Below, in pieces: positions 1 through 61,691 of a stretch of 64,000 nucleotides of DNA. Made by a program: the position numbers and the translations under genes. The first letter of the stretch is position 1. Every line of letters starts with the position of its first letter. The notes under the pieces are model-generated. The model did no database searches and was not told the origin of the DNA. It worked only from the letters and a program-made list of their open reading frames with translations. Source of the DNA: Macrostomum hystrix (Eukaryota; Animalia; Platyhelminthes); the NCBI GenBank assembly GCA_950097015.1, contig CATNEN010000001.1, positions 17,794,001 to 17,858,000 on the forward strand. The letters run 5' to 3'.

Positions 1-285
1 TGGGGATAGTTTTTTGCTGTATACTGTATTGCCGAATTAGCTCTTCTTCTGCTTCTTTTCTTGCCCCCGATGGGAGTGGACCTGAGAGTTCCTTAGCTAG
101 GTCCGACCTCAGGCCACTGCCCAGGGGCTCTCCTGGTCTTGTGTTTACCTCATTCTCTACTCTTGTCCAACCTTTCCTCTCGTCTCTCCTATCTTGACTT
201 CTCTTCCTTTTCATTTTCCCTTCCTGTAGATATTCTCACCGTCTTTTTTATACGTGAATAAATGTGTACTGTACAATGTTTTAAT
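1..285. repeat. Direct repeat of 10157-10441 (3' flank of the LOTUS-like ORF)
   Basis: tggggatagttttttgctgtatactg...gtacaatgttttaat reads identically at 1 and at 10157. Confidence 0.95.
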
Positions 286-321
286 TTCTTGTAACATGTT
301 TTACGGCTTTGCGCTTTGCTG

Positions 322-534
322 CCCGGTGGGACAACCGCGCCCAACCCGCGCCCTCCAACCAGCGCCCCGCTGTACGCCCCACTATACGCCCACCCACCGG
401 TCACTGGTGGGAGGGCGTATAGTTTGGCCAGGCGGCGCACTGGTGGCCCACCAGTGTGGGGCGCGGGTTGGGGTGGGGGGTCGACGGGAGGTAAATAAAA
501 TTCGGGGCATATCCTCAAAGTCTACTGTTAGTAG
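322..534 (+). repeat. Left terminal inverted repeat with GC-rich hairpins
   Basis: Hairpin actatacgcccacccacc...ggtgggagggcgtatagt and G-run cluster at 457-480; inverse of 9460-9647. Confidence 0.85.
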
Positions 535-544
535 AAATGTTAGT

Positions 545-975
545 TTGAAATCATGAAGCCAACTCAGTCGTGTAGGAAATCATTTCTAGATTGATTTTCA
601 ATTGAATCCGACTCGATAAACTGTGCTCAAATCTATTGGGACACCGACGACAGCCATATAGTACTGACATGACTTTCCAGGTTAATAAGTTCGAGTGGAA
701 ATCATTTGAAATCATGAAACCAACTCAGTCGTGTAGGAAATCATTTCTAGATAGATTTTCAATTGAATCCGACTCGATAAACTGTGCTCAAATCTATTGG
801 GACACCGACGACAGCCATATAGTACTGACATAGTCAGAGTCAAGATAATATTTTCTAGGTGACTTTCCAGGTTAATAAGTTCGAGTGGAAATCATTTGAA
901 ATCATGAAACCAACTCAGTCGTGTAGGAAATCATTTCTAGATAGATTTTCAATTGAATCCGACCCGATAAAGTTT
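545..975. repeat. ~190-bp tandem repeat (about 2.3 copies)
   Basis: gactttccaggttaataagttcgagtggaaatc recurs at 671 and 861; same unit at 56958-57543. Confidence 0.9.
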
Positions 976-1011
976 GGCATGCTTATAGTCACTCTTTAAC
1001 TGAGCATATAT

Positions 1012-1113
1012 ACCGATAAGCTTCTAAGTCTAAGCTTCCGATATGGGCGGCACCGGCCGCCTCCTCGCTGCGTCCGTCATGGAGGCTCCCTGCCGCTAAG
1101 TCAAGTAAGTCAA
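1012..1113 (+). mobile_element. Short retroposed insertion (5'-truncated LINE/RTE-like tail) with 10-bp TSD
   Basis: gagcatatat flanks it at 1002-1011 and 1114-1123; it ends in aagtc-type repeats; the equivalent site in copy B (~57758) is empty. Confidence 0.6.
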
Positions 1114-1287
1114 GAGCATATATTGATTTAATTATTTATTTATTTAATGATTTGTATTAGTAAATTAAAAAATTTAAGCAATGAAATGAACCAAGTCTTG
1201 ATACAACACTGATACAACACAACAACAATGATACAACATTGATACGATACAACGATACAATGATACAACAATATATAAACATTTAAA

Positions 1288-2242
1288 GCTCAGTTTAATG
1301 ACAATTATCCCAGATCCTCAGTTTGGTGACAACCCCAGATCCTCAGTTTCGTGACAATCCCAGATCCTCAGTTTAATGACAATTATCCCAGATCCTCAGT
1401 TTGGTGACAATCCCAGATCCTCAGTTTGGTGACAACCCCAGATTCTCAGTTTCGTGACAACCCCAGATCCTCAGTTTCGTGACAATCCTAGATCCTCAGT
1501 TTAATGACAATTATCCCAGATCCTCAGTTTGGTGACAATCCCAGATCCTCAGTTTAATGAAATGAACTAAGCCTTGATACAACACAACAACAATGATACA
1601 ACATTGATACGATACAATGATATATAATTGTATCGACAACAATATATAAAAATTTAAAGCTCAGTTTAATGACAATTATCCCAGATCCTCAGTTTGGTGA
1701 CAATCCCAGAACCTCAGTTTGGTGACAATCCCAGATCCTCAGTTTAATGACAATTATCCCAGATGCTCAGTTTGGTGACAATCCCAGATCCTCAGTTTGG
1801 TGACAACCCCAGATTCTCAGTTTCGTGACAACCCCAGATCCTCAGTTTCGTGACAATCCCAGATCCTCAGTTTAATGACAATTATCCCAGATCCTCAGTT
1901 TGGTGACAACCCCAGATCCTCAGTTTCGTGACAATCCCAGATCCTCAGTTTAGTGACAATCCCAGATCCTCATTTTAATGACAATTATCCCAGATCCTCA
2001 GTTTGGTGACAATCCCAGATCCTCAGTTTGGTGACAACCCCAGATTCTCAGTTTCGTGACAACCCCAGATCCTCAGTTTCGTGACAATCCTAGATCCTCA
2101 GTTTAATGACAATTATCCCAGATCCTCAGTTTGGTGATAATCCCAGATCCTCAGTTTGGTGACAATCCCAGATTCTCAGTTTCGTGACAATCCCAGATCC
2201 TCAGTTTCGTGACAATCCCAGATCCTCAGTTTGGGGACAATC
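1288..2242. repeat. 22/25-bp minisatellite (gatcctcagtttggtgacaatccca)
   Basis: Dozens of tandem units, interrupted by a gatacaaca-rich block. Confidence 0.95.
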
Positions 2243-2333
2243 AGTCCATGACAACTAAATAAAAAAACGACGAAACTAATTCACTAAGTTGACTTATGCT
2301 GGAATGCCGGATGCTGTTGCCAGGGGCCGGTTA

Positions 2334-2699
2334 TCAAGGACGCCACACAGGCTGGGCTCCCTCCTGGTCCATCGACTGGCTAGATTCTTCGTCAGTAGAC
2401 AAAGCCGACACCATTGATGAGGCCGAAGACTTGCAGCAGAAGCTCATGGCCGTAGATTGAGTCTTGGCTGAGCCATTCAGCAGCAGCTCCACAGTCAGCT
2501 CCAGGATGTCGGCCTTCTCTAGGCGCTTAATCCGGTACGGTTTTATCACCTTGTTGGCCTGCAGCAGCTCTTTGAGTCTGTCCAAGCTGGCATTAATTCT
2601 GGCTCTGCGCTGCTGCTCCATCACCTGCTTGCTGATTCTCCTATGCTCCATCAACTCTACTGGGCGCGTGGTTCGTGTTTTTTTAATTCGGAGCTCCAT
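2334..2699 (-). CDS. hes: Hairy/Enhancer-of-split (HES) bHLH protein, intronless, no Orange domain; C-terminal WRPW truncated to WRP by TGG>TGA
   Basis: bHLH ME..RRARINASLDRLKELL...RLEKADILELTV; ends PVWRP*. The paralog at 61692 ends WRPW. TATAAAA lies ~35 bp upstream on the minus strand. Confidence 0.9.
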   Translation of the reverse strand: MELRIKKTRTTRPVELMEHRRISKQVMEQQRRARINASLDRLKELLQANKVIKPYRIKRLEKADILELTVELLLNGSAKTQSTAMSFCCKSSASSMVSALSTDEESSQSMDQEGAQPVWRP

Positions 2700-3794
2700 C
2701 GAAATTTCGAAATCGACCGGCCGAGTTTATAATTTTATAAGTACCCCCTGCACCGCCAACCCCCTGTTTCCTTTCCTCTATTCCCCGCTATAAGTCTCTT
2801 ATAGCAGCTCAAGTTCTGTGTTTATCTATATTAGCAAATTTTGAAATGTCAACTAGGGATAAAAAGAGGGCCTCAGTTTAATCAATATTCATAAAGGCAT
2901 TCAGAACAAGATAGTTTATTCACAGTTAGTCAATCATGTCTTTTTGGTTGGCACTCAACAGGCTGTTGTTGATTGTTGGTCATTCAGCTTCATCACCAGA
3001 CTAGGATTCTTGGGACTCCTTGTCCTGTTAGATAGGCTCTCCTTGTCCTGTTAGGTGTGAGAGGTGAGACAGTTGGTTTGCTGTTTGTATTTAGATCTAT
3101 AGCTAGGCAAGAAGGGGCAGAAGGCTGATAAGAGCTTATACAGGATTGTTAGCTATATTAGGTTAAATAGGACCACAATTGAGGTAATTATACAGGGCTG
3201 GTATGAACTGTGTATGGGGCTTGAGCATAAATGTACAAGATCTGATAGCTCAAGTGTACACTCTAGTACATCAGATAACTCAGTAAAGATAGCTAGCAAT
3301 ACCACAATTCTAGCTAGTGTTATAAAGACCTGGGGAAAATAGTGTTCATAAATAAATAGTCATTAGCTAGAGGAATTTCATAAACAGCAGTTTCAAGGCA
3401 AACTACTGCTCATGCAGTATCAAAACCAATAGCTCAAGGCAAACTGCTGTGCGTGCATTATCAAAACTGAGAGCTCAAGCAACCAGCAAAAAATTTGTCT
3501 GTTGGGTATCTTGGGCTGGGTTGGGCTAACACTAAAAATGATTATGTACTCAAGCACTTACCATAGCCTTTAATCATATGTGATTAGTTCTCATATGCCC
3601 TTAGCTATGCTATGAGAGTGAAGACAGCCAGATGCCACAATTCCAGCTAGTGAGCCAGTGTGATAAAGACCTGGTAAAATAAAGTTGATAAATAAATAGT
3701 CATTATTAGGAAATTTCATAGCAAAGTTATATAACTGTACCAGACCAAATAACTCTAGTGTACACTAGGATCACTTATATTGCTTATAGAAACA

Positions 3795-3940
3795 AGAAGA
3801 GAAGAGGAGAAAAAAGGACAGGAGAGAAGAGGAGAGGAAAGAAGAGAGGAAAGAAGAGCAGAGGAAAGGAGGGGAGAGGGGGAGAGGAGGGGGGAGAGGA
3901 GAGGAGAAGAGGAGGGGGGAGAGGAGAAGAGAAGAGGAGA
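3795..3940. repeat. Polypurine (GA-rich) low-complexity tract
   Basis: Almost pure G/A; related tracts at 24325-24550 and 24845-25080. Confidence 0.9.
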
Positions 3941-4943
3941 GAATTTCATAAACAGCAGTTTCAATGCAAACTAACTGCTCATGCAGTATCAAAACCAATA
4001 GCTCAAGGCAAACTACTGTGCATGCATTATCAAAACTAAGAGCTCAAGCAACCAGCAATTGTGTGTTGGTATCTTGGGCTGGGTTGGGCTAACACTAAAA
4101 ATGATTATGTACTCAAGCACTTACCATAGCCTTTGATCCTATGTGATTAGTTCTCATATGCCCTTAGCTATATCATGAGAGTGAAGACAACCAGATGCCA
4201 CAATTCCAGCTAGTGAGCCAGTGTGATAAAGACCTGGTAAAATAAAGTTGATAAATAAATAGTCATTATAAGGAAATTTCAGAGCAAAGTTATATAACTC
4301 TAGTGTACATTGGGATCAATTGTTATTGCTTTGCAGGAGCTAACCAACAATTTTGGGTTGGGTACCTAGCAAACACTTTATACAAGAAATGATTAGCCAA
4401 GCCTTACCAGTTCTCAGATGCCAGCCTGAAGATAGCAAGCAAAGCCACCATTCCAGCTTGTGTGATAAGGACCTGTTAAGATGTACTATCCCTCACTGCA
4501 GCTTGCTAAGTTTTTACCATCCTTTTAACAGCTTTCACTTTCTTGAATCCATAATTCCTTTCAGGCTCTTCAATTATTTGTAGCCACATTTCACTTTTCT
4601 TTTAAGCTTTTAGCTGAAATGGCTCTGACATCATCCATGAGCAATGAGCTGCAGCTCAGGAGCATTGAGCTAAAAGCTAGGTTTCTCTAGCTAGTGAAAC
4701 CAAGCTATACACTTTTACCATCCTTTTAACTACCTTAAATCCATTTGAACATTTTAAAGACCCTTTGATACACTTATTTTACTCTTATTCACTTCTACTT
4801 TTGCTTTACCTTTACTTTTACTTATTTACTTTTCAATTTTCAGAGAATTCGGATCGAGATTCTACTTCTTATAGAGATAGTTACTTCAATAATTACTTCT
4901 ATAGTTACTTCTACTCTCTTCTATATCTCTATAAGAGATAGTT

Positions 4944-5286
4944 ATGGATAATAATAAGCAGCAGCAGCAGTTCGGCTAAGAGTGCCGGGACTCGGTCACC
5001 GCTCCTCTCCAGGGGGCGGTGGTTGGGGCTCCACCTGGCGGCGGCCTCGTGGGTCCTTCTTCCTCTGGGAGGCTGGGCCTCGCGGGGTGGCTGCTGGCTG
5101 CTGCTCCCAGTCCGTACCCAACAACAACAGCAGCAGCTGCAGACGAGCAGCCCATGGAAGCTGCTGCCCACCACGGTGGCAGGCAGAAGCTCTGCAGTCC
5201 AGTGGTGGAAGGAGAAGGGAGGGGCCGGGGCGGCCACCAATTTCACGCCGCCTAGGCCCCGGTGCCCTCCCTCACAGAAGAAATAA
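4944..5286 (+). pseudogene. Small Q-rich orphan protein family, copy 1 (frameshifted 5' part)
   Basis: ATG at 4944 gives MDNNKQQQQ; the C-terminal SPWKLLPTTV...VQWWKEKGGAGAATNFTPPRPRCPPSQKK is in another frame. Homologous to 21394-21723 and 25768-25968. Confidence 0.6.
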
Positions 5287-7434
5287 ATAAGGTTTGTCTA
5301 AGCTACCTATATGTGATACCTTTATTCCTTAATTCTTAATCCTTAATCGTTAATTCTTTAAATAAGCGCTATCGTAGTAAAATTATACCCGTTTGCAGGT
5401 GTAAGTTTTCATTGACTGTGGTAAAACAATATTTACTTTTAGCCATTATAGCACAATTTATCAAAATGCGATTGTCACACTACAATGCTAATGCAATATT
5501 ACAACGTCGCAAAATGTACTCACATTCAATATGATTGTAGCCATAATGTCATATGTCGTGTCGTGTCGTGTTCATGTTTAACCAGAAAATTGCATGAGCC
5601 ATCCTGCAAGCCCTATAGCAAGTTTATCTGCAAATTTAAAGAAGCAGATAGCAACTGCGTACGAAGATAACCCCTCACTCCACCTTCATGCTGTCCAATA
5701 ACGAGCTGCTAACACACCTCGAAACCTCCCGCTTCGTCATTTCAGACGCATTTCAAATGAAAGGATCGACTCCTTTCATCCTTTCATAAAGGATTATATT
5801 AGGAATATTTTGGAATATATCTTTGCTTGTTGTCTTCCTTTATTTCACTCATATTTATTTATTAGCTTGATGCACAGCCTAAATGTTTAGCTTCTTAGCT
5901 TTAGCTTAGCATGATAACCAACATATTTATCGAGCACTCCTTGCTTCGTGTTCCTGCACTTGCTCACTTGCTTTGCTTGCCTGCTTTGCTACAATTCGTA
6001 GCAAAAGTACATTTTTTCATTTCTACTAACATTTATACTAAGCTGCTACTAACATTTACACTCCGACCCTTAAGCTGGCTAACACTTAAAAGATTCGCAT
6101 GCTTACCATCTGACCTCTGTGTCCCTGTAGCTAAGAGTTTGCTACAATTCGTAGCAAAAGTTCATTTTTCATTTCTACTAACATTTATACTAAGCTGCTA
6201 CTAACATTTACACTCCGACCCTTAAGCTAGCTCACTTAAAAGATTCGCATGCTTCCCATCTGATTACAGGCAATCGTTATAGACAAATGATAAATATGTA
6301 AATTGGGTCTGAAACATTCCATATTTTTTCCAGACGTTCTCCATGAACACCTGACGCCTGGTACACGGTCAGGCGTGTCAAGAAACGGAAGCTGCGGATG
6401 ACATTGATATTAGTGTATATTCTAATTCAGTCAGCTACTCAGCGTCGAGTAGCAGTTGGCCCAGCATCCCGGCGAGCTGTATCTGGCCGAGTTTAGCAGG
6501 TTAGATAACGACAGCGACCTTCACGTACTCCATGTCACGTCAATGGAGTTCCACGGCTGCGCTCGCAACAAGGTTGAATAATCTTTTTGTTTTGTTTGTT
6601 GTAGTTTATGAAATAGTGTGCAGCAACAATTAGTTTATTTATAGCATTTATAAGTAGCATTTATATAGCATTTATAAGTACTTGTAGTTATCTCATACTT
6701 TTATAGGAAACAGTCTGTCTTAATTACATGTCTTCAAAATCAAGGTTTAATTACAGATGATAAGTCATGCATGGGCAATATGAGAAAACACGAGAAAACA
6801 GAACAAAAGATATCCGTAAGAAAAAAATAGTTTTCATGAGTGAAGTTACGCAACTGAGAATCGGACAATCCGTACTTTAATTCTGAGTCATTGTCTGGAT
6901 CATGTGATTTCTAGGGTATTGTTGGGTAATGTGCATCCCCGCTTCACTCGTGAAATGAATTCTGTTCTAGAATTCCTATCTGTGGTTTTAGATGTCATGT
7001 TCAGACTAGATTCCCCCAAATGTGCCTTGTCTAAAAACAAACCTCATAAGCAAACAAGGTAGATTATTTTCTTCGAGAACCCCTCAACAATTAGCTAGTT
7101 CTCAAAAAAACTCCTCGCAACGAGCGTGTGAATTAAAAAATGACTGTCAACACAGGTGTATTTATTCTAGCACAGGTAGTGTTACACTTAAAATAAAAAA
7201 GCAAGAAAAACAAAACCCAATTCATTTTTAATACTGCAGTACACCGCTAGCTGGACATTTCAGATCTCATACTTGTTTACATGAGTGAAGTAGCGCAACT
7301 GACAATCAGACAATCCGTGATGTAATTCTGAGTCATCGTCTATTTGTCTGGATCGTGTGATTTCTAGGGCAACGTAGGGATTTCTGAGGTAATTAAATTA
7401 TGGGATTTCTGATTTGGGTGTCATTTTGTCTAAG

Positions 7435-8160
7435 TCATTTTTCTAAAAAAAGTTTTACTTTCTCGTGGTCGAAGTGAAATTTGTAAAAGTGCTTGTCTCT
7501 TGGGTGGGTCTTGGTGATAAGCTTGTCCTCGTAGTAATGCCTCAGCGCTCGCTTCATCGTTTCAAAGCTCATGTCCCGCCGCTTGTGACTGCTCCAGGCC
7601 TCTGCTAGGCCGGTTGGGTTTACAATTTGGAAAATGCCCTCCAGCTTGTTCTCCCAGCGCAAGCATGGTGGCGACAGGTCAGCGACAGACGGAGTTTCGA
7701 GTAAGTGGTACAGAAACTCCCACAGCCAACAATTCCTGTCTGAGATTGGGCAATGTTAAGTTTTAATAGCTAATTGTTGGTAAATACTATAGATTCCCAA
7801 ATCCCAAATTTTGCAGCTCAAAAACACTAACCGATACCAGCACGCTTCTTCCTTGTTCTTTTTATGACGCCTGGTGGCTGCACATGCGTTGGGAGATGCG
7901 AAGGAACCAACCAAAGGAAGCTATCAATCGGAGGCAGCTGCTGCTGATGCTGTTGCTGTCCGATGGACCTGATGGTATGCTGCTCATTTTTGCCTGCAAA
8001 GCACTCCGATGCGCTCATGGCCCCCGTGGCATCTTCGTCGGCAACCGGCTTATAGAGATCGAAGAGGGCAGCGCTGTCGTAAGATTGGAGGTCACCGAAT
8101 TCACGGCGCATCACGGTGAAGTCCAAGGCGTCTAGACCGCTCAGGTCATCGACGGGCTGG
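7435..8160 (-). CDS. ETS-domain transcription factor, copy 1 (exons ~8160-7832 and 7739-7435; start uncertain)
   Basis: GTTAGT donor and ctcag acceptor join in frame to DRNCWLWEFLYHLLE...CLRWENKLEGIFQI...LAEAWSSHKRRDMSFETMKRALRHYY...FYKF, the canonical ETS signature. Confidence 0.85.
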
Positions 8161-9029
8161 TAAGAATTAAATGAGTTTGCGATTAGCTTGTCTCCCGTGA
8201 ACAATCAATCTAGACAGCGTGTCCCATAGCTAGACAATCTAGCCAGTCTCCGCAATAAAGTGTTGCTATAGTAACTGTCTCCCATAGAACTACCAGTCTC
8301 TGTCTTGAATCATAGATTTACCTTTAGGGATTCAGTTGTATTTCGGCTATCAAACTTCATGGTCCCAGTGTCTGGCACAGCCTCAAAGAGGAAGCAGTTA
8401 ATATTACTCTTGGCCGCTTCCGCTTTGTTGCTTATAGTTGTTGGAAAAATATTGTGGGTGCATGTATCCGCTTTAGACAGCTAGCCAAGTTACAATGTAA
8501 GCTATCTATATGCTACCCTAAAGAAACGCTTTGTTTGCCACCTCACCTAAAGCCACCTCACCCATCTCACTCAACCTCACTCTATCTCACCCAATCTCAC
8601 TTAATCTCACTCAATCTAACCCAATCTCACCCTTTCTCTCCCATAACAATCCAATGTCCCTCAATCTCACTAAATCTCATGCAGTCTAACCCAATATCAC
8701 CCAATTCTCCCTATTCATCCCCTTAACAATTAATCAATTATTCAAACGAAGAATAAAATGAATCGAATTAAACTATGTCCAACCCAGCAACCAATTAGAA
8801 GGAGGACCATAGAGCACTCACTTTAAATCGAATTCTCATTGGTTGCCGCTCAATTTATGCCGCTCGATTTATGCCGCCCATTTAAATATGCAATTCGTAT
8901 CGCATATTCCCCTAATGGATAAAGCTTACAGGATACAGGATACAACCCAATCTCAATGGATACAGCTTGGGATGTGTCCAGTAAATGCTTTTTAGCAGCT
9001 GTATAATTTTCAGCTTTTTTACAGCTACA

Positions 9030-9420
9030 AAGATCCCCCAGTTGACAATGATCTCTCAGTTGACAATGATCCCCCAGTTGACAATGACCCCCCAGTTGAC
9101 AATGACCCCTCAGTTGACAATGATCCCCCAGTTGACAATAATCCCCCAGTTGACCAGGATCCTCCATTTGATGATGACTACCCATTGATGATGATCCCCA
9201 GTTGACAATGATCCCCTATTCGATGATCCCCCAGTTGATGATGATCCCCCACTTGACAATGATCCCCCAGTTGACAATGATCCCCAAGTTGACCATGATC
9301 CCCCAGTTGATGATGATCCCCCAGTTGACCATGATCCCCAAGTTGACCATGATCCCCAGTTGACAATAATCCCCCAGTTGACAATGATCCCCCAGTTGAC
9401 AATTATCCCCCAGTTGAAAA
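9030..9420. repeat. 18-bp minisatellite (gatcccccagttgacaat)
   Basis: About 20 tandem units directly inside the right TIR; shares its core with the 22-bp array. Confidence 0.95.
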
Positions 9421-9438
9421 TGGTCGATTAATTACTGC

Positions 9439-9647
9439 GCTCAAAAAATACAACACAGCCTACTAACAGTAGATTTTGAGGATGTGCCCCGAATTTTATT
9501 TACCCCCCACCCACCCCAAATCGCGCCCCACACTGGTGGGCCACCAGCGCCCCGCTGTACGCCCCACTATACGCCCACCCACCGGTGCCCGGTGGGAAGG
9601 CGCATAGTGGGGCGTACAGAGGGGCGTATAGTAAATGTCCCACCGGG
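9439..9647 (-). repeat. Right terminal inverted repeat with long hairpin
   Basis: Inverse of 322-534 and 56723-56954; contains a ~38-bp-stem hairpin cgccccgctgtacgccccactatacgcccacccaccgg / ccggtgggaaggcgcatagtggggcgtacagaggggcg. Confidence 0.85.
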
Positions 9648-9681
9648 TGTCTGCATACTCCTTTAATGTAGCCGTCCTATA

Positions 9682-10038
9682 ATGGATATTCGCGACGTCG
9701 TCCAGCGAGCCATCTCGCAGATTATCGACTCTGTTGGCGGCGTCGTCGAACTGCTCCGATTCTGTACGGCTCTCCGAGCTGTCGGTATCTCACGGGGCGA
9801 GGTGCTGGTAGCCGGCTACCCGTCCTTCATCGCTGCCATCCAGTCGACGCCTGGCATCAGCGTCGTACGCATGGAAGACGACCGCGTCTTTGTGCTCCGA
9901 GGCCCGACAACACGTGAGCGAGTGCGTGAGTTATTGGCTGCGCCAATAAACATTGCGGACTTTTGGCTGCGCACATGGGCTGAGCGGGTCGATCGGGAAG
10001 GTGGTGGTGGTGCTAGGCCGGACCAAGGTCGGAATTAA
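9682..10038 (+). CDS. Stand-alone LOTUS/OST-HTH-like protein (118 aa)
   Basis: VQRAISQIIDSVGGVVELLRF...LVAGYPSFIAAIQSTPGISVV follows the OST-HTH pattern (helix, GxVxLxxL, GYxSFxxxLxSxP, beta strand). Clean ATG-TAA intronless ORF. Confidence 0.6.
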   Translation: MDIRDVVQRAISQIIDSVGGVVELLRFCTALRAVGISRGEVLVAGYPSFIAAIQSTPGISVVRMEDDRVFVLRGPTTRERVRELLAAPINIADFWLRTWAERVDREGGGGARPDQGRN

Positions 10039-10756
10039 TTCGACAAATGGCAACCTAGAATTGGGGATAAATTAGGAACAGGGGTTTCAGGGAGATTAAC
10101 TGACTTGGAGATGGATGGGAGCAAAATGGGGATACATTTTTAACATGGGATTGAATTGGGGATAGTTTTTTGCTGTATACTGTATTGCCGAATTAGCTCT
10201 TCTTCTGCTTCTTTTCTTGCCCCCGATGGGAGTGGACCTGAGAGTTCCTTAGCTAGGTCCGACCTCAGGCCACTGCCCAGGGGCTCTCCTGGTCTTGTGT
10301 TTACCTCATTCTCTACTCTTGTCCAACCTTTCCTCTCGTCTCTCCTATCTTGACTTCTCTTCCTTTTCATTTTCCCTTCCTGTAGATATTCTCACCGTCT
10401 TTTTTATACGTGAATAAATGTGTACTGTACAATGTTTTAATGTAATTTAATGTACTTTCATGTAATGAAATATTATTAAATGTAACTTAATGTAATATAA
10501 TTCATTATGTACTTTCTTAAATTGTAACCGCGTATATTTTTTAATGTGAATGTGAAACTAAATAAATAAAATTAATAGTAGTAAATGAAATACATTACAG
10601 TTAAAGAAAACTTAAATATTTGGTAGTGAGTTAGCAGATGTCGCAGCGCCTTTTACTTCGTTTCTTTCCTCAAATAACTAAAATATCAGAGGTTATAGCC
10701 GCGTGCATGACTAAAAGCGTTGCACTATGCGCAACACAGTGCTTAGTGAATTCTCT

Positions 10757-21723: not shown

Positions 21724-23366
21724 AAGGTTTGTTAAACCACGTACTTTTTGCTATTTTATACTAATGGTTTTTCGCAATTCTTGACAGTTTTTTTATAATT
21801 CTTAAAATATGATTTTAAACGTCCTAAAAAATTATACCCGGTTTTGCAGGTTTTACTTTCCCTAAAAAGTTCATATTGGTGCTAGGTGGTAAAACTAAAT
21901 ATCTTTCTAGCCATTAGCTACACGTCGTTTAACATGCTGCAATTCACACAACACACAATATTACAATAAAGCAATAAAATGCACTCACCTTTAATATGAC
22001 AGTAATTAAATGCTATAACGTTAGTCTTTTTGTCGTACGTGCCGCACTTCGTGTTTAACCATGCAGCTCATTCCATAAGCCAACCCTAAGCATTTGCTTA
22101 GAGTTGGATGCATGCCCTTGTTGCCATTGGATAAAGCATTTATTAAAGGTGCATGTTTTTACTAAATAATGATATTTGCGTTGCATGCCAAATATTAATT
22201 ACGTATTTAAATTATCACATTTGTGCCTTAAAACTCCTTTTCGCCTTTCAGAGCATGCATATACGGCTTAGTCAGCACGGCTTAGTCAGCGATATAGCGC
22301 CAATTAATAATTAAGCTGCATTTTTGGATATCTATGCCTTCGTGTCTTTATTTATTTCACACTTGTTTATTTATTACATGCACTGCATGCATTAAGTATT
22401 TATAAATTGCTTTAGCTTTGCACGACAACAAACGTATTTATTGAGCTATTGCACCTTGCTTTGTGTTTAAGATGCACTTAAGATGCATGCATGCAATTAG
22501 CTTCTTAGAATGACTTGATATAATAGCTGGCTATCGCATCTGTCCCTTAAAGGCTTGCTGAAATGTAGCTGAAATTCAGAGTTGACCAGGGATCAAATTT
22601 CAACCGAAAGCAAAAACTGTATACTGTCAAATTCCAATTTTAGTTTTCCCCGTTCCAGAAAATCCTGAGACGTGTGTTGCAAGGTGGTCGGCAGAAAATG
22701 TACCGACGAGACATCGCTCTTAGCTTTTACCTCGGATGTACAGGTATGCAGTTACTTTCTTCTTAAGCAGTTTGAGTTTAAATTCACATTAGGAATTCAA
22801 AATGAGATAAATGAATTGATCTAACCCTCTGCAGCATGGGGAATTTCAGTCAGCGTCGAGCACAAGTTTGCCCAGCGTCCCGGCTAGCTGCATCTGGCCG
22901 AGTTTAGCAGGTTAGAGAAAGACAGCGACATTCACGAACTCCTTGTCATGTCAATAGAGTTCCACGGCTGCACTCGCAACAACGTTAAGTGTGCTTTTTG
23001 TTTTTTAGTTTATGAAATAATGTGCAGCAACTATTAGTTTATTTATAGTATAGCATTTATAAGTACTCGTAGATATCATACTTTTATAGGAAACAGTCGG
23101 TCTCAATTACATGTCTTCAAAATCAAGGCTTAATTACAGATGATAAGTCATGCATGGACAATATGAGAAAACACAAGAAAACAGAACAAAACATGGCCGT
23201 AAGAAACAATAGTTTACATGAGTGAAGTAGCGCAACTGACAATCAGACAATCCGTGATGTAATTCTGAGTCATTGTCTGGATCATGTGATTTCTAGGGCA
23301 ATGTAGGGATTTCTGAGGTATTAATTAAATTATGGGATTTCTGATTTGGGTGTCATTTTGTCTCAG

Positions 23367-24090
23367 TCATTTTTCTAAAAAAAGTTTTAACTTCTCGTGG
23401 TCGAAGTGAAATTTGTAAAAGTGCTTGTCTCTTGGGTGGGTCTTGGTGATAAGCTTGTCCTCATAGTAATGCCTCAGCGCTCGCTTCATCGTTTCAAAGC
23501 TCATGTCCCGCCGCTTGTAACTGCCCCACGCCTCTGCTAGGCCGGTTGGGTTTAGAATTTGGAAAATGCCCTCCAGCTTGTTCTCCCAGCGCAAGCAGGG
23601 TGGCGACAGGTCAGCGACAGGCGGAGTTTCGAGTAACTGGTACAGAAACTCCCACAGCCAAAAATTCCTGTCTGAGGTTGGGCAATGCTAAGTTTTGATA
23701 GCTAATTGTTGTTAAATACTAAAGATTCTCAAATCCCAAATTTTCGCAGCTCAAAAACACTAACCGATGCAAGCACGCTTCTTCCTTGTTCTTTTTATGA
23801 CGCCTGGCGGCTGCACATGCGTTAGGAGATGCGAAGTGGGCGGATCAAGCGAATGAACCCAGCAAAGGGAGCAATCAATCGCCGAAGCATTCAGTCGCTG
23901 CTGCGGATGCTGTTGCTGTCCGATGGACCAGATGGACTCCGATGCGCTCATGGCCCCAGTGTCATCTTCGTTGGCAACCGGCTTGTACAAATCGAAGAGG
24001 GCAGCGCTTTCGTAAGACTGGAGGTCACTGAATTCGCAGCGCATCATGGCGAAGTCCAAATTGTCTAGACTGCCCAGGTCATCGACGGGC
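23367..24090 (-). CDS. ETS-domain transcription factor, copy 2 (exons ~24090-23765 and 23671-23367; start uncertain)
   Basis: Same splice sites as copy 1; DRNFWLWEFLYQLLE...LAEAWGSYKRRDMSFETMKRALRHYY. Confidence 0.85.
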
Positions 24091-24322
24091 TGGTAAGAAT
24101 AAATGGGTTTGCGATTAGCTTGTCTCCCGTGAACAATCAATCTAGACACCGTGTCCCATAGCTAGACAATCTAGCCACTCTCCGCAATCAAGTGTTGCTA
24201 TAGTAACTGTCTTTCTAGCTATAAGCTAGCTACCTAGAAAATCTACGAGATTTTGATATACTCCTAGTAGATACCCACTGTCTCCCATAGAACTACCAGT
24301 CACTGTCTCGAATCATAGATTT

Positions 24323-25500
24323 ACCAAGAAGAAAAAAGGAGGGGAGAAGAGGAGAGGAGAGGAGAGCAGAGAAGAGCAGAGGAAAGGAGGGGAGAGGAAA
24401 GGAGAGGAGAGGAGGGAGGAGGAGAGGAGAGAAGAGAGTAGAGAAAAGCAGAGAATAGGAGAAGAGAGAAAAGGAGAGGAGAGGAAAGGAAAGAGGAGGT
24501 AGGAGGGGAGGAGAAGATGACAGGAAAGAGAGAAGAGGACAGGAGAGAATGAGTATCTTGAGCTTAGTTGGGCCAACACTGAGAAATGATTATGTACTCA
24601 AGCACTTACCATAGCCTTTAATCATATGTGATTCGTTCTCATATGCCCTTAGCTATGCCATGAGAGTGAAGACAGCCAGATGCCACAATTCCAGATAGTG
24701 AGCCAGTGTGATAAAGACCTGGTAAAATAGAGTTGATAAATAAATAGTCATTTTTATAAGGAAATTTCAGAGCAAAGTTATATACCTATACCAGACCAAA
24801 TAACTCTAGTGTACACTAGGATCACTTATATTGCTTGTAGGACCAAGAAGAAAAAAGGAGGGGAGAGAAGAGGAGAGCAGAGAAGAGCAGAGGAAAGGAG
24901 GGGAGAGGAAAGGAGAGGAGAGGAGGGAGGAGGAGAGGAGAGAAGAGAGTAGAGAAAAGCAGAGAATAGGAGAAGAGAGAAAAGGAGAGGAGAGGAAAGG
25001 AAAGAGGAGGTAGGAGGGGAGGAGAAGATGACAGGAAAGAGAGAAGAGGTATGAGGGGAGGAGAAGAGGACAGGAGAGAATGAGTATCTTGAGCTTAGTT
25101 GGGCTAACACTGAGAAATGATTATGTACTCAAGCACTTACCATAGCCTTTAATCATATGTGATTAGTTCTCATATGCCCTTAGCTATGCCATGAGAGTGA
25201 AGACAGCCAGATGCCACAATTCTAGATAGTTAGCCAGTGTGATAAAGACCTGGTAAAATAGAGTTGATAAATAAATAGTCATTTTTATAAGGAAATTTCA
25301 GAGCAAAGTTATATACCTATACCAGACCAAATAACTCTAGTGTACACTAGGATCACTTATATTGCTTGTAGGACCAAGAAGAAAAAAGGAGGGGAGAGAA
25401 ATGATTATGTACTCAAGCACTTACCATAGCCTTTAATCATATGTGATTAGTTCTCATATGCCCTTAGCTATGCCATGAGAGTGAAGACAGCCAGATGCCA
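24323..25500. repeat. ~520-530-bp tandem duplication containing GA tracts
   Basis: accaagaagaaaaaaggaggg at 24323, 24842 and 25373; homologous to 3530-4290. Confidence 0.85.
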
Positions 25501-25767
25501 CAATCCATTTGAACATTTCAAACACCCTTTGATACACTTATTTTACTCTTATTGACTTCTACTTTTGCTTTACCTTTACTTTTACTTATTTACTTTTCAA
25601 TTTTCAGAGATTTTTCAGAATTCTGAAATTCTGATATTACTCATTCTAGTGTAATAAAAAACAGCTATTCTGCAAGGAGTCATTAAACCATCTTGATAAC
25701 TAGGCACTGAACATACAGGGCACTGAAATTTAGTAAAATTTACTGAACTTTGAATTATTTCAGAATT

Positions 25768-25968
25768 ATGGATACAGAACAGCAGCAGCAGCCACAGCAG
25801 CAGCAGCAGAACCTAGTTTCTAACAGCCCTTGGAAGCTGCTGCCTACCTCAGTGGAAACCTCCAATTCCAAGGTCCAGTGGTGGAAAATAAAGGGAGGGG
25901 CCGGGGCGGCCACCAATTTCTCGCCACCGAAGGTGCCCCGGTGCCCTCCCTCATCGGCAAAGAAATAG
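25768..25968 (+). CDS. Small Q-rich orphan protein family, copy 3 (intact, 66 aa)
   Basis: MDTEQQQQPQQQQQNLVSNSPWKLLPTSVETSNSKVQWWKIKGGAGAATNFSPPKVPRCPPSSAKK; a ttttcag acceptor lies just upstream. Confidence 0.6.
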   Translation: MDTEQQQQPQQQQQNLVSNSPWKLLPTSVETSNSKVQWWKIKGGAGAATNFSPPKVPRCPPSSAKK

Positions 25969-27087
25969 AAAGGTTTGTCTAAGCTGCCTATATGTGATAA
26001 CTTTAGTCCTTAATTCTTAATCCTTAATCGTTACTTCTTTAAATAAGCGCTAGTAGTAAAATTATACCCGTTTGTAGGTGTAAGTTTATATTGACTCTGG
26101 TAAAACAATATTTACTTTTAGCCATTATGGCACCATTTATCAAAATGTGATTGTCACACTACAATGCTAATGCAATATTACAACGTAGCAAAATGTACTC
26201 ACATTCAATATGATTGTAGCCATAATGCCATATGTCGTGTCTTGTCGTGTTCGTGTTTAACCAGAAAATTCCATGAGCCATCCTCCAAGCTTTAAAGCAA
26301 GTTTATCTGCAAATTTAAAGAAGCAGATAGCAACTGCGTACGAAGATAACCTCTCACTCCACCTTAATGCTGTCCAATAACGAGCTGCTTTGGGTCTTAA
26401 CGGTCATAATATAGTATCTGGATGGCAGAGCGAGCATGTACATGCACAGTCCAACAATCTAGCAAATTATATGGAAATATGGAAATATGAAAATCTAGCA
26501 AATTGGCACGCACCTCGAAACCTCCCACTTCGTCATTTCAGATGCATTTCATACGATTCAGGAAGCTGTTATTTCGGAAGATATGAGACATGATATCAGA
26601 TATGATATGATATTATGATATGTGATATAAAGAAGAGAGGATTGATAAAGAAGAGAGGATTGATAGTTTGATAGTTTGATAGTTATGATATTTTGGAATA
26701 CATCTTTGCTTGTTGTCTTCCTTTATTTCACTCATATTTATTTATTAGCTTGATGCGCAGCCTAAATGTTTAGCTTCTTAGCTTTAGCTTAGCATGATAA
26801 CCAACAAATGGAGTATATGGAGTAATAGAGTATACATACACCCAGTTCTGGAGAAATGGAGTATACATACACCCAGTTCTGTGAACGGGATAATTTTTTT
26901 ATGTCCAGTAACATGTATGTCTGTAACAAATAGCAATTAAAGATCCTTGCGGTGGGGCAAGGTAGCAACTTAAAATCCACTATTCAATGGACGAAATTCG
27001 AAGCAGATAAGATAAGTGTCCTGACTAGCTGAGTTGCCAACTCAGTTGCCAACTCAGTTGCCAACTCAGGTAGTCAGGGGATCGACA

Positions 27088-27308
27088 CCTCAGTTTGGTG
27101 ACAATCCCAGATCCTCAGTTTAATGACAATCCCAGATCCTCAGTTTGGTGACAATCCCAGATCCTCAGTTTAATGACAATTATCCCAGATCCTCAGTTTG
27201 GTGACAATCCCAGATCCTCAGTTTGGTGACAATCCCAGATTCTCAGTTTCGTGACAATCCCAGATCCTCAGTTCGTGACAATCCCAGATCCTCAGTTTGG
27301 TGACAATC
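27088..27308. repeat. 22-bp minisatellite (same family as 1288-2242)
   Basis: Tandem gatcctcagtttggtgacaatccca. Confidence 0.95.
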
Positions 27309-27386
27309 AGTCCATGACAACTGAATAACAAAACAACGAAACTAATTCATTAAGTTGACTTGGAATGCCGCATGCTGTTGCTAGGG

Positions 27387-27510
27387 TTACCAAGGACGCC
27401 ACACAGGCTGGGCTCCCTCCTTGTCCATCGACTGGCTAGATTCTTCGTCAGTAGACAAAGCCGACACCGTTGATGAGGCCGAAGACTTGCAGCAGAAGCT
27501 CATGGCCGCA
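27387..27510 (-). pseudogene. HES C-terminal fragment (…QPVWRPW*), bHLH missing
   Basis: Near-identical to the 3' third of 61692-62060. Confidence 0.85.
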
Positions 27511-28080
27511 GAATGTTTGTGTTAGGAAAAAAGGGGAAATATTTGTAACGATAATTCAAGTGCTAACAATTAATGCACGAAAATATATCAAGGAATAGCT
27601 AGAAGAGCTACATGAATAAAATTAATATACATAGACATCGCTACCTATCAAGCAATCAAAGTGCAAAACTCCCTTAAATGTGCCTTATCGAAAAACAAGG
27701 TCCCTGTCTTTAGGTCCATGTTCACAAACTTTTAGTTCTGAACCATTCGGTACATTCATGGGTGAATTGCTGACTGGGTGGGGAGCACAGACTAATTAGA
27801 TAAGACTTTACTTCTGGGGGGAGACCCACAGACTAGGTAGCCACGGTCAAAACTCTAAATATTCTTATCAGTTTTTTATTCTGCTGTTACCTCAGCTCTT
27901 TCGGCCTTGCAAGTTCTGTGACTATGTCGAAGAGCTCTATATGCTCTATATGCCAACTGTTCCTAGAAGTCACTTTAATAACAAAGTAGTTTACGACAAA
28001 GAGGATACATAGTTATACATATACACGGATGCAAGTTACGCAAAATAAACTAAACGAGTCATAGAAACTTGTTTGTATAC

Positions 28081-28647
28081 CTAATCTCGCAGCCATGGGT
28101 TCTTAACAAAAACGTCACTATCAATTTTTTTACCAGCCGTGTAGTCGAACGTAAGTTCTGTGCCGGCTGAAACATATTGGGTTGTCACAAAATAAACGAC
28201 GGGTCGGAGCCCCTGGTTGATGATAATTAACTTCGCTTTACAGTTGGGAGCAGTAGCAGAATGATTTAGATACCTCCCAAATCCATCGCTGTTGCTGGCG
28301 TCAACTATCCATAATTTACCGTTAAATTTAAATTCAAATAGAAGCCAGTCAGAGTTGGGTTCAACTTCACGCCGAATCGCTTCCTGCTCGTTCAGCAGGA
28401 TGCCGGCGAACTCGTCGACATAAGCCCCGGCAGCTAGGTTGATTTTCGCAAAGGCGCCCAGTCCCTTCACGCCCGCAGGTGCAACGGCGATCGCGGTGTC
28501 CGTCTTTCCGTTGATGCCCAGAACGCGTTCCGTAATATCTTTAGTGGTTGTCGGGGGACGATAATTAATGGTAGACCGGCTCAGCCTCCGAGCCGGCCTC
28601 GTCTCAACGGTTGGCACAGGCTCAGGCTGCGGGGTGTAGTTAAACAT
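28081..28647 (-). CDS. SET-domain lysine methyltransferase, SETD8/KMT5A/PR-Set7-like
   Basis: KGLGAFA, EFAG.L..QEA..RE, WIVDAS, GRYLNHS, PNC, ELTFDY and C-terminal PWL; no pre- or post-SET Cys clusters. Confidence 0.9.
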   Translation of the reverse strand: MFNYTPQPEPVPTVETRPARRLSRSTINYRPPTTTKDITERVLGINGKTDTAIAVAPAGVKGLGAFAKINLAAGAYVDEFAGILLNEQEAIRREVEPNSDWLLFEFKFNGKLWIVDASNSDGFGRYLNHSATAPNCKAKLIIINQGLRPVVYFVTTQYVSAGTELTFDYTAGKKIDSDVFVKNPWLRD

Positions 28648-31534: not shown

Positions 31535-33520
31535 CTAGCTTTCCTGTCCCGTTAGCGGAATGACGTAAAAAAAGTCGTCATTTTGGGCCGGTCTACTAAG
31601 AGCTTTCGGAAGCAGCCAACATTTTTGCCCTGGGCGGCCAGTTGCGATTTCGGATGTTAGGCGGTAAACTCCAATCCTAAGTGCCAGAGAGTCGTAAGGA
31701 TAGTTGTAGACATTGTCGAATTCCTGGAGCACTCTGCCACTTACCATGCCGTCCGGTTTAACTTCATCAATATGAATGCATGTCGTCCCAACGAAGCAGC
31801 AATTGTCACCCTTCTTCGTGCTGAATTCTATAGTTGTTTCTGCTGGCTGGCTGAGGTACATATTTCGTACTTGTAGTACTTGACAAACTGAATGAGCGGC
31901 GACATGCCTGGTGACTTTGACCCTTCTCTTGATTGCTCCCAGATAGCTTTCGAATGGAAATGTACTAAAATTATTTAAGTTACCTAGCCTTCTAACAAAC
32001 TGGTCGAGGTGAAGAAGTGCATGAATATTGTAGCTAATTGATTTTTGGCCAAATATCTTTGACATCTGTTCGACGAATACCTCGATGCAGCTTTTCGCTG
32101 AATCCCATAGATTAGCATACCTTTCCGTGGAATAGCAGTATACGGCGAAGTGCAGTAGGAGAAAATTTTTGTAAAACTGTTTCTCAACATATCCCTTAAA
32201 AATTATTGGTCCTAGGTAAAGAATAATTTGTCTGAACTCTGTCGCCTTAAAATGGTTAAGACACTTATCTATGCGGCGAGGTCTTCTCTGGAAATTAGAC
32301 GGAGTCCAGCTGGCAATACCGGCAATGATGTCCGACAAAGACTTCATATTCCTGCGACTAAAGCGGCAGCCTCCTTCTCCAAAATAAAAGTGCATTAACT
32401 TCCTTACTGCTCCCAGACAAACGGCATGTTGAAAATCCAGAGGAAAACAGTTGACGAAGTCAATGTTGGGCAGGTCCAACAGTGGTGACTTGATGACCGC
32501 TCCTGTGGCGTCTTTTTTCTGGTTGTTCTCTACTAGGGATCGGTACGCTTCCCCACATCTATTCTGGCCAGCAGTTACGGAAAATGACACTCTGCCTTCA
32601 GCACGCAAGCCCACAGCTCGACAGTAACTGCATCCTAAGTAGCTTGTGTGACCCAGAGTGCACATTAAAAAACTGCGGGCAGGGGTGTCGCAGACAAAAT
32701 AAATAGTGGAGAACATGATGCTGATTTTCTCACTGATTTTGACTGGACCAGACAGAAAGTTTTTTGCCTCTTGGCAAAACTGTTGCAGGTACTCCTGTAC
32801 TGGTGGCTTTCCAGTGCCGGCCCAAACAGCCACTGGAAAAGGCTTAGCGAATGCGGATTTAATTTTCATTAGGAGTGGCCATAGACTAATCGTACTGGAT
32901 CGATAGAGGGGAAGTCCGTCACTGTTTAGAAATGCATCGAATTTGTAACACTTTGTTTGACTTTCATGCAGCAAATTTTCTGGTCGCAGTGTCAACAAAT
33001 TCTTCGAAAGTAGTTGCTGCAGATTCTCCAGAATAGAAATATAACGAAAGTGCCCGTCTCCCATGGCCACCAAGTCACCAGTAGGACAGTTTTCTCTGGC
33101 CAGGCGTTCAAATGTTTTGTAAGATTTTGTGACAGGCAAACCAATGTCGCGTAAACCCGCAAGTAGGAAAGCCATGGCGTCACGGGGAATGTTGTATGTA
33201 GAAAAGAACAAAACAAGGAGTGCCTGTAGCCTTACCTCCAAGGGCCGATTGTCTTCAACCTTTTCGCTGTCCATGTCGTCATCGCTTTGAGTTTCCTGCT
33301 CAAACTCGTCGAATTCTACCCTACTAAAATCTTCTTCCGTCTCCATGTCCACATCGCCTTGACTTGCCGACTGCCCTCCACTGCCCTCCACTGCCCTCCA
33401 CTGCCGACTGCCCACTGGCTGAGGGGACACTGCTGGGCCTCTCACTCTCAGCTTCTTCTCTAAACATGGCCAACAAGCTCTTGTTTGTCTCTCTCCTAAT
33501 ACTCCTGCTCGACATGCCAT
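31535..33520 (-). CDS. EnSpm/CACTA(Mirage)-type DDE transposase, intact 661 aa
   Basis: NSDGLPLYRSSTISLWP, VCDTPARSFL..GHTSYLGCSYC, PLDFQHAVCLG, FKATEFRQ, YNIHALLHL and FSTFPFESYLG are motifs of animal EnSpm transposases. Confidence 0.88.
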   Translation of the reverse strand: MACRAGVLGERQTRACWPCLEKKLRVRGPAVSPQPVGSRQWRAVEGSGGQSASQGDVDMETEEDFSRVEFDEFEQETQSDDDMDSEKVEDNRPLEVRLQALLVLFFSTYNIPRDAMAFLLAGLRDIGLPVTKSYKTFERLARENCPTGDLVAMGDGHFRYISILENLQQLLSKNLLTLRPENLLHESQTKCYKFDAFLNSDGLPLYRSSTISLWPLLMKIKSAFAKPFPVAVWAGTGKPPVQEYLQQFCQEAKNFLSGPVKISEKISIMFSTIYFVCDTPARSFLMCTLGHTSYLGCSYCRAVGLRAEGRVSFSVTAGQNRCGEAYRSLVENNQKKDATGAVIKSPLLDLPNIDFVNCFPLDFQHAVCLGAVRKLMHFYFGEGGCRFSRRNMKSLSDIIAGIASWTPSNFQRRPRRIDKCLNHFKATEFRQIILYLGPIIFKGYVEKQFYKNFLLLHFAVYCYSTERYANLWDSAKSCIEVFVEQMSKIFGQKSISYNIHALLHLDQFVRRLGNLNNFSTFPFESYLGAIKRRVKVTRHVAAHSVCQVLQVRNMYLSQPAETTIEFSTKKGDNCCFVGTTCIHIDEVKPDGMVSGRVLQEFDNVYNYPYDSLALRIGVYRLTSEIATGRPGQKCWLLPKALSRPAQNDDFFYVIPLTGQES

Positions 33521-49864: not shown

Positions 49865-50769
49865 TGATAGGAATTCTGAGGTGCAAACTGCTTCTGCGGA
49901 TACTGCCTTGAGTTTTGACAGTTCTTCGCGATATGGCCTATTTTTTGGCAATTATAGCAAGTCGGCGGAGGCCTTGACTGCTGATATGGCTGCTGGAACC
50001 TCACCTGCTGCTTCATGAGCGGCTGGGGTTGTCTGTTCTGGCTTTCTGCCTTACTCTTCGCCTGGATGAGAGTCTCAATCATCTTCCTCTGTTTATTAAT
50101 TTCCATCTTCTGCTTTTCGATTAGATCTTCGAGATTTGTCTGCTGTTCATCGCCTAGTTCACCCTTCATCACTCTCAAGCCGTTCTTATGAGACATGTGC
50201 CAGGCGGCTTCTATCCTCCTCAGCATACGTCTGGCTTCTTGCAAACTGGCGGGTTGTGCGAAAATCAGTTTCTCTCGGGTGTCTGCAGGGACTCTGGCAC
50301 CTTTGATAAACTGTTCCACGACTTCCTCCTCACGCTGTTCAGCATTCATGTTAGGGAATGCGCGGGATGCTAGTTCAATAAGGGCATCCGCGAATGAGTC
50401 AGTCGCTTCATTTCGTCCTTGTAGTCGTCCACGAAATTCTTCTCTGAACTCCGATGAACTGCCCAATCGGCCAAATCTTTCCACCAATCTCTCCTTGAAC
50501 TCATCATAGGTCAATTCTTCAGGTAAGTTCAATCGTTGGACTGCTGCAAACGCAGTAGCCAAGTCCAGATTAGCCAATAATTCACTCTTTCTGTGTTCCT
50601 CTTGTTCGATCCCTTCGGTGTCACACCTTTGATCGAAGGCTGTCAGCCAAATCCGAATGTCCTGACTCGGTGTATATTTTTGAATTTTCACGTGCCTCAT
50701 CGGGCCTAATTCCAAACGATTCCTCAACTCTTCTGCTAGTAGCCCAATGGCATCATTGATTCCTGCCAT
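49855..50769 (-). CDS. gag: Gypsy Gag with CCHC zinc knuckle
   Basis: CYNCQKIGHIAKNC; capsid-like Q.RNE..D.F and QFIKG motifs. Confidence 0.95.
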   Translation of the reverse strand: MAGINDAIGLLAEELRNRLELGPMRHVKIQKYTPSQDIRIWLTAFDQRCDTEGIEQEEHRKSELLANLDLATAFAAVQRLNLPEELTYDEFKERLVERFGRLGSSSEFREEFRGRLQGRNEATDSFADALIELASRAFPNMNAEQREEEVVEQFIKGARVPADTREKLIFAQPASLQEARRMLRRIEAAWHMSHKNGLRVMKGELGDEQQTNLEDLIEKQKMEINKQRKMIETLIQAKSKAESQNRQPQPLMKQQVRFQQPYQQSRPPPTCYNCQKIGHIAKNCQNSRQYPQKQFAPQNSYQGN

Positions 50770-56146: not shown

Positions 56147-56504
56147 TCTGTGCTTCCGCGGGTTAATTATAGGCGCGTTCAAATTTGGATGTATGAAAAT
56201 GAGCAGGCTGCAGAAAGCCAACGCAGTCCCAGGTTCTCAACTTCTTCAACTGGGTGCAACATGGTGGGATTCCCTATTAATAAAGTCCCAAGTACATCAC
56301 AAGGAGAAGGAGCAGGCTATTTAGGATGAGCAGCAGATAGTACCACTGTTACTACTACTTATAGTAGATCAATATGCGCGCACATGTGCGCGCATAATGA
56401 TCTTATAGCTTTAAACTGATAGATTGAGATTCTATTAATAGGTGCTTAATTAGGTTAATTCGGATCCCGGTTAAGTTGATAGTGTGTACTTTTAGCGAGA
56501 AGTA

Positions 56505-61603: not shown

Positions 61604-61691
61604 AGTCCATGACAACTAAATAAAAAAACGACGAAACTAATTCACTAAGTTGACTTATGCTGGAATGCCGGATGCTGTTGCCAGGGGCCGG

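Follow-up and report, generated by a model that had tools for sequence, protein, structure and literature searches.

How genes for two developmental regulators, one of the HES and one of the ETS type, came to lie together between short inverted repeats is the question raised by a stretch of DNA from the flatworm Macrostomum hystrix. The stretch, called the window below, is 64,000 nucleotides long (C1:17794001-17858000); contig C1, of 27.6 Mb, makes up 12.5% of an assembly of 220,453,370 bp in 42 contigs, the longest of 35,345,953 bp. An earlier note on the window had proposed that the unit at 322-9647 is a Pack-CACTA-like transposon mobilising a HES gene, an ETS gene and a novel microprotein. 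We confirm that this unit is a true cut-and-paste transposon. Very probably it arose by deletion as a non-autonomous member of a large family of cargo-bearing DNA transposons in M. hystrix, which belongs to the CACTA/EnSpm-Mirage-Chapaev (CMC) clade.

The element at 322-9647 and its family

The element begins with the 12-bp terminal inverted repeat (TIR) CCCGGTGGGACA and closes with the reverse complement at 9636-9647, with TG flanking it at both ends (Table 1). With at most one mismatch, the 12-mer is found at three sites in the window (322, 9636 and 56723) against 0.08 expected; genome-wide there are 82 occurrences, of which C1 has 51, whereas a reversed control gives 12. The subtermini are palindromic: 363-534 and 9460-9626 are 85% complementary, the 5' subterminus pairs strongly with itself (z = -6.0), and a tandem array adjoins each of them. 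No open reading frame (ORF) longer than 125 amino acids (aa) and no transposase match was found inside 322-9647. The perfect terminal repeats, the palindromic subtermini, the TG on both sides and the lack of a transposase, all of which the earlier note had described, were thus seen again on re-reading.

The DNA on both sides of the element belongs to a tandem array of about 830-bp units (window 1-321 and 9648-10441; L001:365-1500, or C1:17793186-17794321), which are 96-99.9% identical to each other. The adjoining unit preserves the unbroken target, which reads ...gctttgcTG followed by TCTGCATAC (L001:640-700), with one TG only. The boundaries of the element and its 2-bp target-site duplication (TSD) are fixed directly, because this neighbouring unit is an empty target with a single TG. 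Each unit of the array also has a 118-aa ORF (9682-10038 in the window) without a Pfam match. A 285-bp direct repeat (1-285 = 10157-10441), which was suspected to be a long terminal repeat or an assembly artefact, belongs to the same array, and both suspicions were rejected.

Ends of the family were paired throughout the genome, and eight further candidate elements of 11.6-26.7 kb were read besides 322-9647. All family ends read CCCGGTGGGACA...TGTCCCACCGGG. More than 20 of them have unrelated flanks up to the first C of CCCGG; flanks shared beyond that point had been named in the earlier note as the mark of plain duplication. Perfect 2-bp TSDs were found in seven large elements, 322-9647 included (TG, TT, GG, GT, TC, AA and AC). 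A miniature derivative of 561 bp, with both family ends and a CT duplication (C1:8066369-8066929; L007:1500-2061), brings the elements with such duplications to eight, and the single TG of the empty site agrees with them. Neither of the two signs that, according to the earlier note, would speak against its reading (flanks in common, or the lack of a consistent short TSD) was therefore seen. The copy reported to start at 56723 with an unrelated left flank was also seen as described; it is collinear with 322-9647 and carries HES.

A common backbone is collinear in E1-E5, E7, E8 and the second copy of the window. It runs from the 5' end through 190-bp repeats, a 25-bp array, HES and a segment of about 1 kb to the equivalents of 2788-4849 and 5119-7062, then, in some members, ETS, and finally an 18-bp array and the 3' (B-type) end. 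The segment of about 1 kb immediately upstream of HES is present in other copies and absent from 322-9647. Large nested insertions occur in the family copies, at positions that differ between copies.

One such insertion, of about 14.5 kb, lies in the family 5' repeats of E3 (C1:19957940-19982181; L034:1932-8274 and L035:1103-2890). Its large ORFs include those for an rve integrase bearing a chromodomain and for an endonuclease VII domain, and the insertion looks like a nested element of the Maverick/Polinton type. At the left end of E9 (C1:14179411-14179437; L048:486-512) two family ends stand head to head, ...AAAAGCTGTCCCACC meeting CCCGGTGGGACATT, with the final three bases missing from the first of them. 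Two elements may be joined end to end here, or one may have inserted at the tip of another. A 606-aa ORF at 54401-56221(-) and its surroundings (window 52734-56708) recur inside E5 (L038/L039) at 92-96% identity, and the DNA directly left of the second copy is therefore itself family-associated or another mobile unit.

Besides the 51 of 82 termini given above, contig C1 has every close ETS copy and almost the whole set of HES copies. This concentration means either that the family hops strongly locally or that C1 is a special, transposon-rich region. The family is apparently young and recently active. It also appears to be undescribed, since the repeat content of the M. hystrix genome is uncharacterised, the nature of its repeats having been left for later work (PMC10468722).

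The transposase and its clade

The earlier note had suggested that the element is moved in trans by the intact transposase at 31535-33520. This ORF recurs in E6, E8 and E9 at 95-98% identity. Both E6 (contig C38, 15.8 kb, TSD AA) and E8 (C1, 26.7 kb, TSD AC) encode it between the same family ends, and no inner termini were found within either of them with up to one mismatch allowed. The transposase of the window is accordingly one of the same family, and it is one of at least three apparently intact copies (661-689 aa; long stop-free frames). It would bind the family ends and the subterminal repeats and so move copies such as 322-9647 in trans by cut-and-paste.

Relatives of the transposase number in the hundreds among metazoans. 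In an alignment of 25 of them the residues D201, D278, C297xxC300, H500xxxH504 and E524 are invariant; a signature of the type D-D-C(2)C-H(3)H-E has been given for EnSpm, Mirage, Chapaev and Transib transposases (PMC12730594). Twelve of the 25 relatives match DUF4218 (PF13960) and three match Tnp2 (PF02992) weakly. The AlphaFold model of the transposase (pLDDT 82.8) was compared by Foldseek, which gave RAG1 as the best match (1.7e-10 over about 570 columns), followed by BbRAGL and HzTransib; a sequence-profile search with the transposase among solved structures gave nothing. Its motifs and predicted fold make the transposase at 31535-33520 one of the CACTA/Mirage/Chapaev type, and the Pfam matches of some of its relatives agree with this.

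The motifs and the predicted fold place the family in the CMC clade, and its TSD of 2 bp lies within the 2-5 bp of the wider clade. Elements of that clade have the termini 5'-CA..TG-3' in most cases, which makes them usual rather than obligatory (PMC12730594). Because the termini here are CCC..GGG and not CA..TG, we file the family in the CMC clade without a sub-lineage (EnSpm, Mirage or Chapaev), between which the 2-bp TSD by itself is not decisive. The "Pack" label suits the non-autonomous copy 322-9647, which has the ends of E6 and E8, but it does not suit E8, in which transposase and HES are found together.

Two further ORFs keep company with the transposase. One, divergently oriented and of 352 aa (34854-35912), accompanies it in the window, in E8 and in E9 and may be a second protein of the family; Pfam gave no usable match for it. 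The other encodes a SET domain and adjoins the transposase in the window and in E9. The end of the 352-aa ORF is overlapped by one arm of a 1,615-bp inverted repeat (window 35848-37462 and 51540-53154), whose arms are 100% complementary and enclose 14 kb of DNA, including a complete Gypsy-type gag-pol (45059-50769).

The regulator genes carried by the family

The HES gene of the family backbone encodes a protein of 122 aa, here called mini-HES. Its ORF in 322-9647, 2334-2699(-), gives a Pfam HLH match of 1.8e-10, and the best named matches are HES-3 and E(spl). No Pfam match to the Orange domain (PF07527) was found in mini-HES, in which about 50 residues follow the bHLH. The mini-HES of the family ends in WRPW, a corepressor-recruiting motif. 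The ORF is open in all seven copies read, and WRPW is present in six of them, the exception being 322-9647. HES copies with more than 80% identity number at least 22 in the genome and, with few exceptions, lie on C1; the ORF is open in 15 of the 16 close copies. An exact family terminus lies no more than 10 kb away from 19 of the 26 HES matches on C1, against 3% at random, and the transposase-bearing E8 carries HES inside one TIR pair.

Two mini-HES proteins of M. lignano, 149-150 aa long, have the same build and the C-terminus VWRPW. Because M. lignano has mini-HES proteins of like build, we infer that the cargo would have begun as host genes. A related observation comes from another organism (runs X1-X3), a 753-base contig of which aligns to window 2491-2651; the match is confined to the two conserved bHLH halves, between which the sequence has diverged. 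This contig is probably the related mini-HES of another Macrostomum species. Isolated fragments of about 50 bp that match the 3' end of the HES ORF exactly were also seen at C9:1361674-1364936 and C2:8158161-8165305.

The ETS gene was described at first as spliced, and a 92-nt intron with GT..AG ends is indeed needed to join its two exons. The protein was searched exon by exon. The partial exon 7435-7662(-) matches Pfam Ets at 9.7e-16, and the full ETS domain matches ETV6 at E = 1e-15, with KRALRHYY aligned to SRALRHYY, so that the recognition-helix arginines are kept. No Pointed/SAM domain, such as that of ETV6/Yan, was found by Pfam in exon 1. There are about 19 close ETS copies in the genome, all on C1. 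Some members of the family carry ETS and others do not, and none was seen in the transposase-bearing members.

Repeated, mostly local transposition on C1 would have multiplied both regulator genes to about 20 copies each. That the family amplifies transcription-factor genes, as had been claimed, holds well for HES and in part for ETS: this backbone accounts for only about half of the ETS copies, and while 19 of 26 HES matches are near family ends, about 11 of 20 ETS copies are far from them. At C1:15907706-15918192, 18586042-18595622 and 18631514-18639615, and in about five more places, a unit 12 kb long or longer is repeated. A fragment of a second CMC-type transposase (39% identical) comes first in it, followed by the 190-bp repeat of the family and then by an ETS copy, and its make-up suggests that it may be a second type of ETS-carrying element.

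Contigs of the family, mostly 95-100% alike, occur in two public runs (X4 and X5). Three contig joints on the minus strand have GTAAG..AG ends and derive from spliced RNA, because the genomic copies keep those introns. The family backbone is thus transcribed and spliced. The HES gene, first called intronless, has an uninterrupted ORF, but spliced exons lie upstream of it. At the position of the HES stop of 322-9647 the contigs read TGG; the expressed copies therefore keep WRPW.

For the microprotein, which the earlier note had given without coordinates, no candidate was validated. Several ORFs of 41-64 aa are open in most copies, as is expected by chance at 1-5% divergence, and none fits the RNA-supported exons.

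Table 1. Coordinates of the element at 322-9647, its cargo and related features of the window
Feature	Position	Strand	Remark
Left TSD copy (TG)	320-321	.	single TG at the empty paralogous site
5' TIR CCCGGTGGGACA, 12 bp, A-type end	322-333	+	82 genome matches, against 12 of the control
5' subterminal palindromic GC-rich region with repeated CACCAGTG/CACTGGTG motifs	322-540	+	self-folding z = -6.0
Three subterminal repeat units of ~160-190 bp	544-1021	+	also in other copies
Subterminal tandem array, ~32 copies of 25-bp unit ATCCCAGATCCTCAGTTTGGTGACA	1307-2242	+	
mini-HES gene: bHLH and C-terminal WRPW, no Orange domain	2334-2699	-	last Trp codon is a stop (WRP*) in this copy
Deletion point ~90 bp upstream of HES ATG	2789-2790	.	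other copies hold ~0.9-1.04 kb there
Exon c of spliced transcript upstream of HES	2791-3047	-	in transcribed copies continues into the ~1-kb segment missing here
Intron, 514 nt, GTAAGT..AG	3048-3561	-	contig joint 3046->3561
Exon b	3562-3670	-	alternative acceptor in duplicated unit gives exon starting 4233
Exon a, donor GTAAGG at 4407	4408-4849	-	intron 4407-4234 (174 nt) or 4407-3671 (737 nt)
ETS exon 2: complete ETS domain	7438-7739	-	closest solved relative ETV6
ETS intron, predicted, 92 nt, phase 1, GTTAGT..CAG	7740-7831	-	needed to join the two exons
ETS exon 1: N-terminal region, no recognised domain	7832-8204	-	no Pfam match
3' subterminal tandem array, 22 copies of 18-bp unit ACAATGATCCCCCAGTTG	9027-9422	+	
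3' subterminal palindromic region	9440-9647	-	terminates in TIR 9636-9647 (B-type end)
Right TSD copy (TG)	9648-9649	.	
Rearranged partial backbone copy	22850-27512	+	frameshifted ETS at 23397-24098(-); HES fragment at 27393-27560(-)
SET-domain ORF	28081-28647	-	adjoins transposase in window and E9
Intact family transposase, 661 aa, CMC type by motifs and predicted fold	31535-33520	-	no family termini nearby in window
352-aa ORF, divergent from transposase	34854-35912	+	companion in window, E8 and E9
Second family member, D-type 5' end	56723-64000	+	cut by window end; intact mini-HES at 61692-62060(-) ending WRPW

Selection on the cargo and the readings weighed

Several observations weigh against the interpretation of 322-9647 as a member of a CMC-clade family that multiplies complete regulator genes. 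The candidates E7 and E9 have no matching duplications, the termini of the family are CCC..GGG against the CA..TG usual in the CMC clade, and the family transposase itself has no Pfam match even at E = 10. The runs with the family contigs are of unrecorded type; in these contigs the ETS region, including its 92-nt intron, is covered unspliced and no spliced ETS joint was seen. For about 11 of 20 ETS copies even the nearest exact terminus is over 45 kb away; these copies have just about 330 bp, upstream of ETS, in common with the backbone, and several of them are near a second transposase lineage that is only 39% identical. The seven HES copies compared differ by 6 synonymous and 11 non-synonymous changes (ratio 0.55, not significant). 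Two ETS copies are 96.4% identical in exon 2, 90.4% in exon 1 and 93.5% in the intron, with flanks at 96-98%; conservation of the exons is thus no better than that of the intron and flanks. The transposase, with 10 synonymous and 19 non-synonymous changes, has the same pattern as the cargo. No signal of purifying selection on the cargo was found, and the pattern is indistinguishable from neutral decay.

The comparison of substitution rates among copies, which the earlier note had proposed, thus gave no departure from neutral. Two older HES copies have ratios of 0.7-1.0 and contain indels. The ratios for HES, ETS and the transposase control, all between 0.5 and 1.0, come from few changes, and the tests are uninformative. 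The earlier note had called the genes apparently intact; as their substitutions cannot be told from neutral ones, this intactness mainly reflects youth. HES of 322-9647 ends in WRP and a stop. We take the cargo genes to be passengers that decay neutrally after insertion. That at least one of them makes a protein with a biological effect is possible, yet we would not count on it.

A gene cluster might instead have been duplicated, segmentally or in tandem, to give the copies, and the inverted ends would then be incidental. The region is rich in duplications, the flank of the element being itself a tandem array, a scrambled partial copy lies at 22850-27512, and some ETS copies occur as spaced pairs. 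However, the more than 20 ends with flanks unrelated as far as the first C, the eight different perfect 2-bp duplications, the single TG at the empty site and the 561-bp miniature with the same ends and its CT duplication make this reading extremely improbable. Segmental duplication is rejected for the backbone copies, but it could hold for the ETS subgroup if long flanks are shared. Could the mover be a different one, for example of the PIF/Harbinger-ISL2EU type, with the CMC transposase merely a neighbour or a nested insertion? Duplications of 2 bp do occur in Harbinger relatives (PMC12730594), and CCC termini are atypical of CMC elements. Against this, two elements that have matching duplications and lack inner termini enclose the CMC transposase, and no Harbinger-type or Myb ORF was recognised among the long ORFs of nine elements, ten of these ORFs having been scanned with Pfam; we hold a different mover to be very improbable.

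Another question is whether the regulators (mini-HES, ETS or both) are working parts of the transposon, which bind its own subterminal repeats or host targets and control its expression or movement. HES lies within one end pair of the transposase-bearing E8 and is kept in nearly all backbone copies, with the ORF open in 15 of 16 close copies and WRPW retained in the expressed ones. The N-box-like motif CACNAG is enriched in the subtermini: 18 ends contain 31 of them, where shuffled sequences give 6.2. The ends are related to one another, however, which makes the count not independent; CACNAG is also similar to the terminal repeat itself, and a transposase site is the simpler explanation for it. 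Of the other HES sites, CACGTG and CACGCG were absent from the subtermini, and for ETS there was no enrichment of GGAA. HES is missing from the transposase-bearing E6 and E9, and the signal of selection is no greater than in neutral decay, so we consider working parts unlikely. In plant CACTA elements a DNA-binding accessory protein, TnpA, is encoded. By analogy, the family's own regulators would be a TnpA-like DNA-binding accessory made from developmental regulators and would time the expression or transposition of the elements, for example in stem cells or the germ line; this we judge to be just as doubtful. If it is true, the roughly 20-fold dosage of the regulators would also change Notch- or MAPK-type regulation in the host. 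With the qualifications given above, the first reading is supported: this is a real CMC-clade family that carries and multiplies complete regulator genes.

Such a family can be compared with several known systems. Pack-type elements have been described as a plant phenomenon (PMC8903248). Like plant Pack-CACTA and Pack-TYPE elements (PMC6379663, PMC8903248), 322-9647 is non-autonomous, has CACTA-type ends and subterminal repeats, carries chromosomal coding DNA and would be moved in trans. The plant elements, however, carry mostly gene fragments, whereas the cargo in M. hystrix consists of whole genes with their own introns or leader; the family also differs in its animal host, its 2-bp TSD, its CCC..GGG termini and at least one transposase-bearing member that has HES as well. 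It has been described as exceptionally rare for DNA transposons to capture genes whole and not as fragments (PMC6431247). Large CACTA-type elements of another host kingdom are similar in their large size (here 9-27 kb) and in having ORFs beyond the usual one or two, but the extra genes in M. hystrix are recognisable developmental regulators in about 20 copies. Fungal CMC/KDZ-type transposons with a TET/JBP dioxygenase gene (PMC12730594) are likewise DDE transposons of the broad clade with a stable accessory gene of cellular type; the fungal accessory is an enzyme thought to serve the element, while the genes carried here, taken above to be passengers, encode sequence-specific DNA-binding regulators. 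The predicted transposase has its best structural matches in RAG1 and Transib transposase, with which it has C(2)C and H(3-4)H motifs in common, but Transib elements have 5-bp TSDs and CAC termini. The mini-HES itself is like the HES/E(spl) bHLH-Orange repressors in its HES-type bHLH and C-terminal WRPW and unlike them in lacking the Orange domain and in being only 122 aa long, the same short build being found in M. lignano at 149-150 aa.

In summary, a CMC-clade family in an animal, which seems to have been active recently, has multiplied two complete DNA-binding regulators to about 20 copies each, which is unusual for an animal DNA transposon. The family offers a system for studying how transposons drive the expansion of regulator families and whether the copies become functional, harmful or silenced. 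Since transgenesis tools exist within the genus, for M. lignano, tests of these possibilities are feasible.

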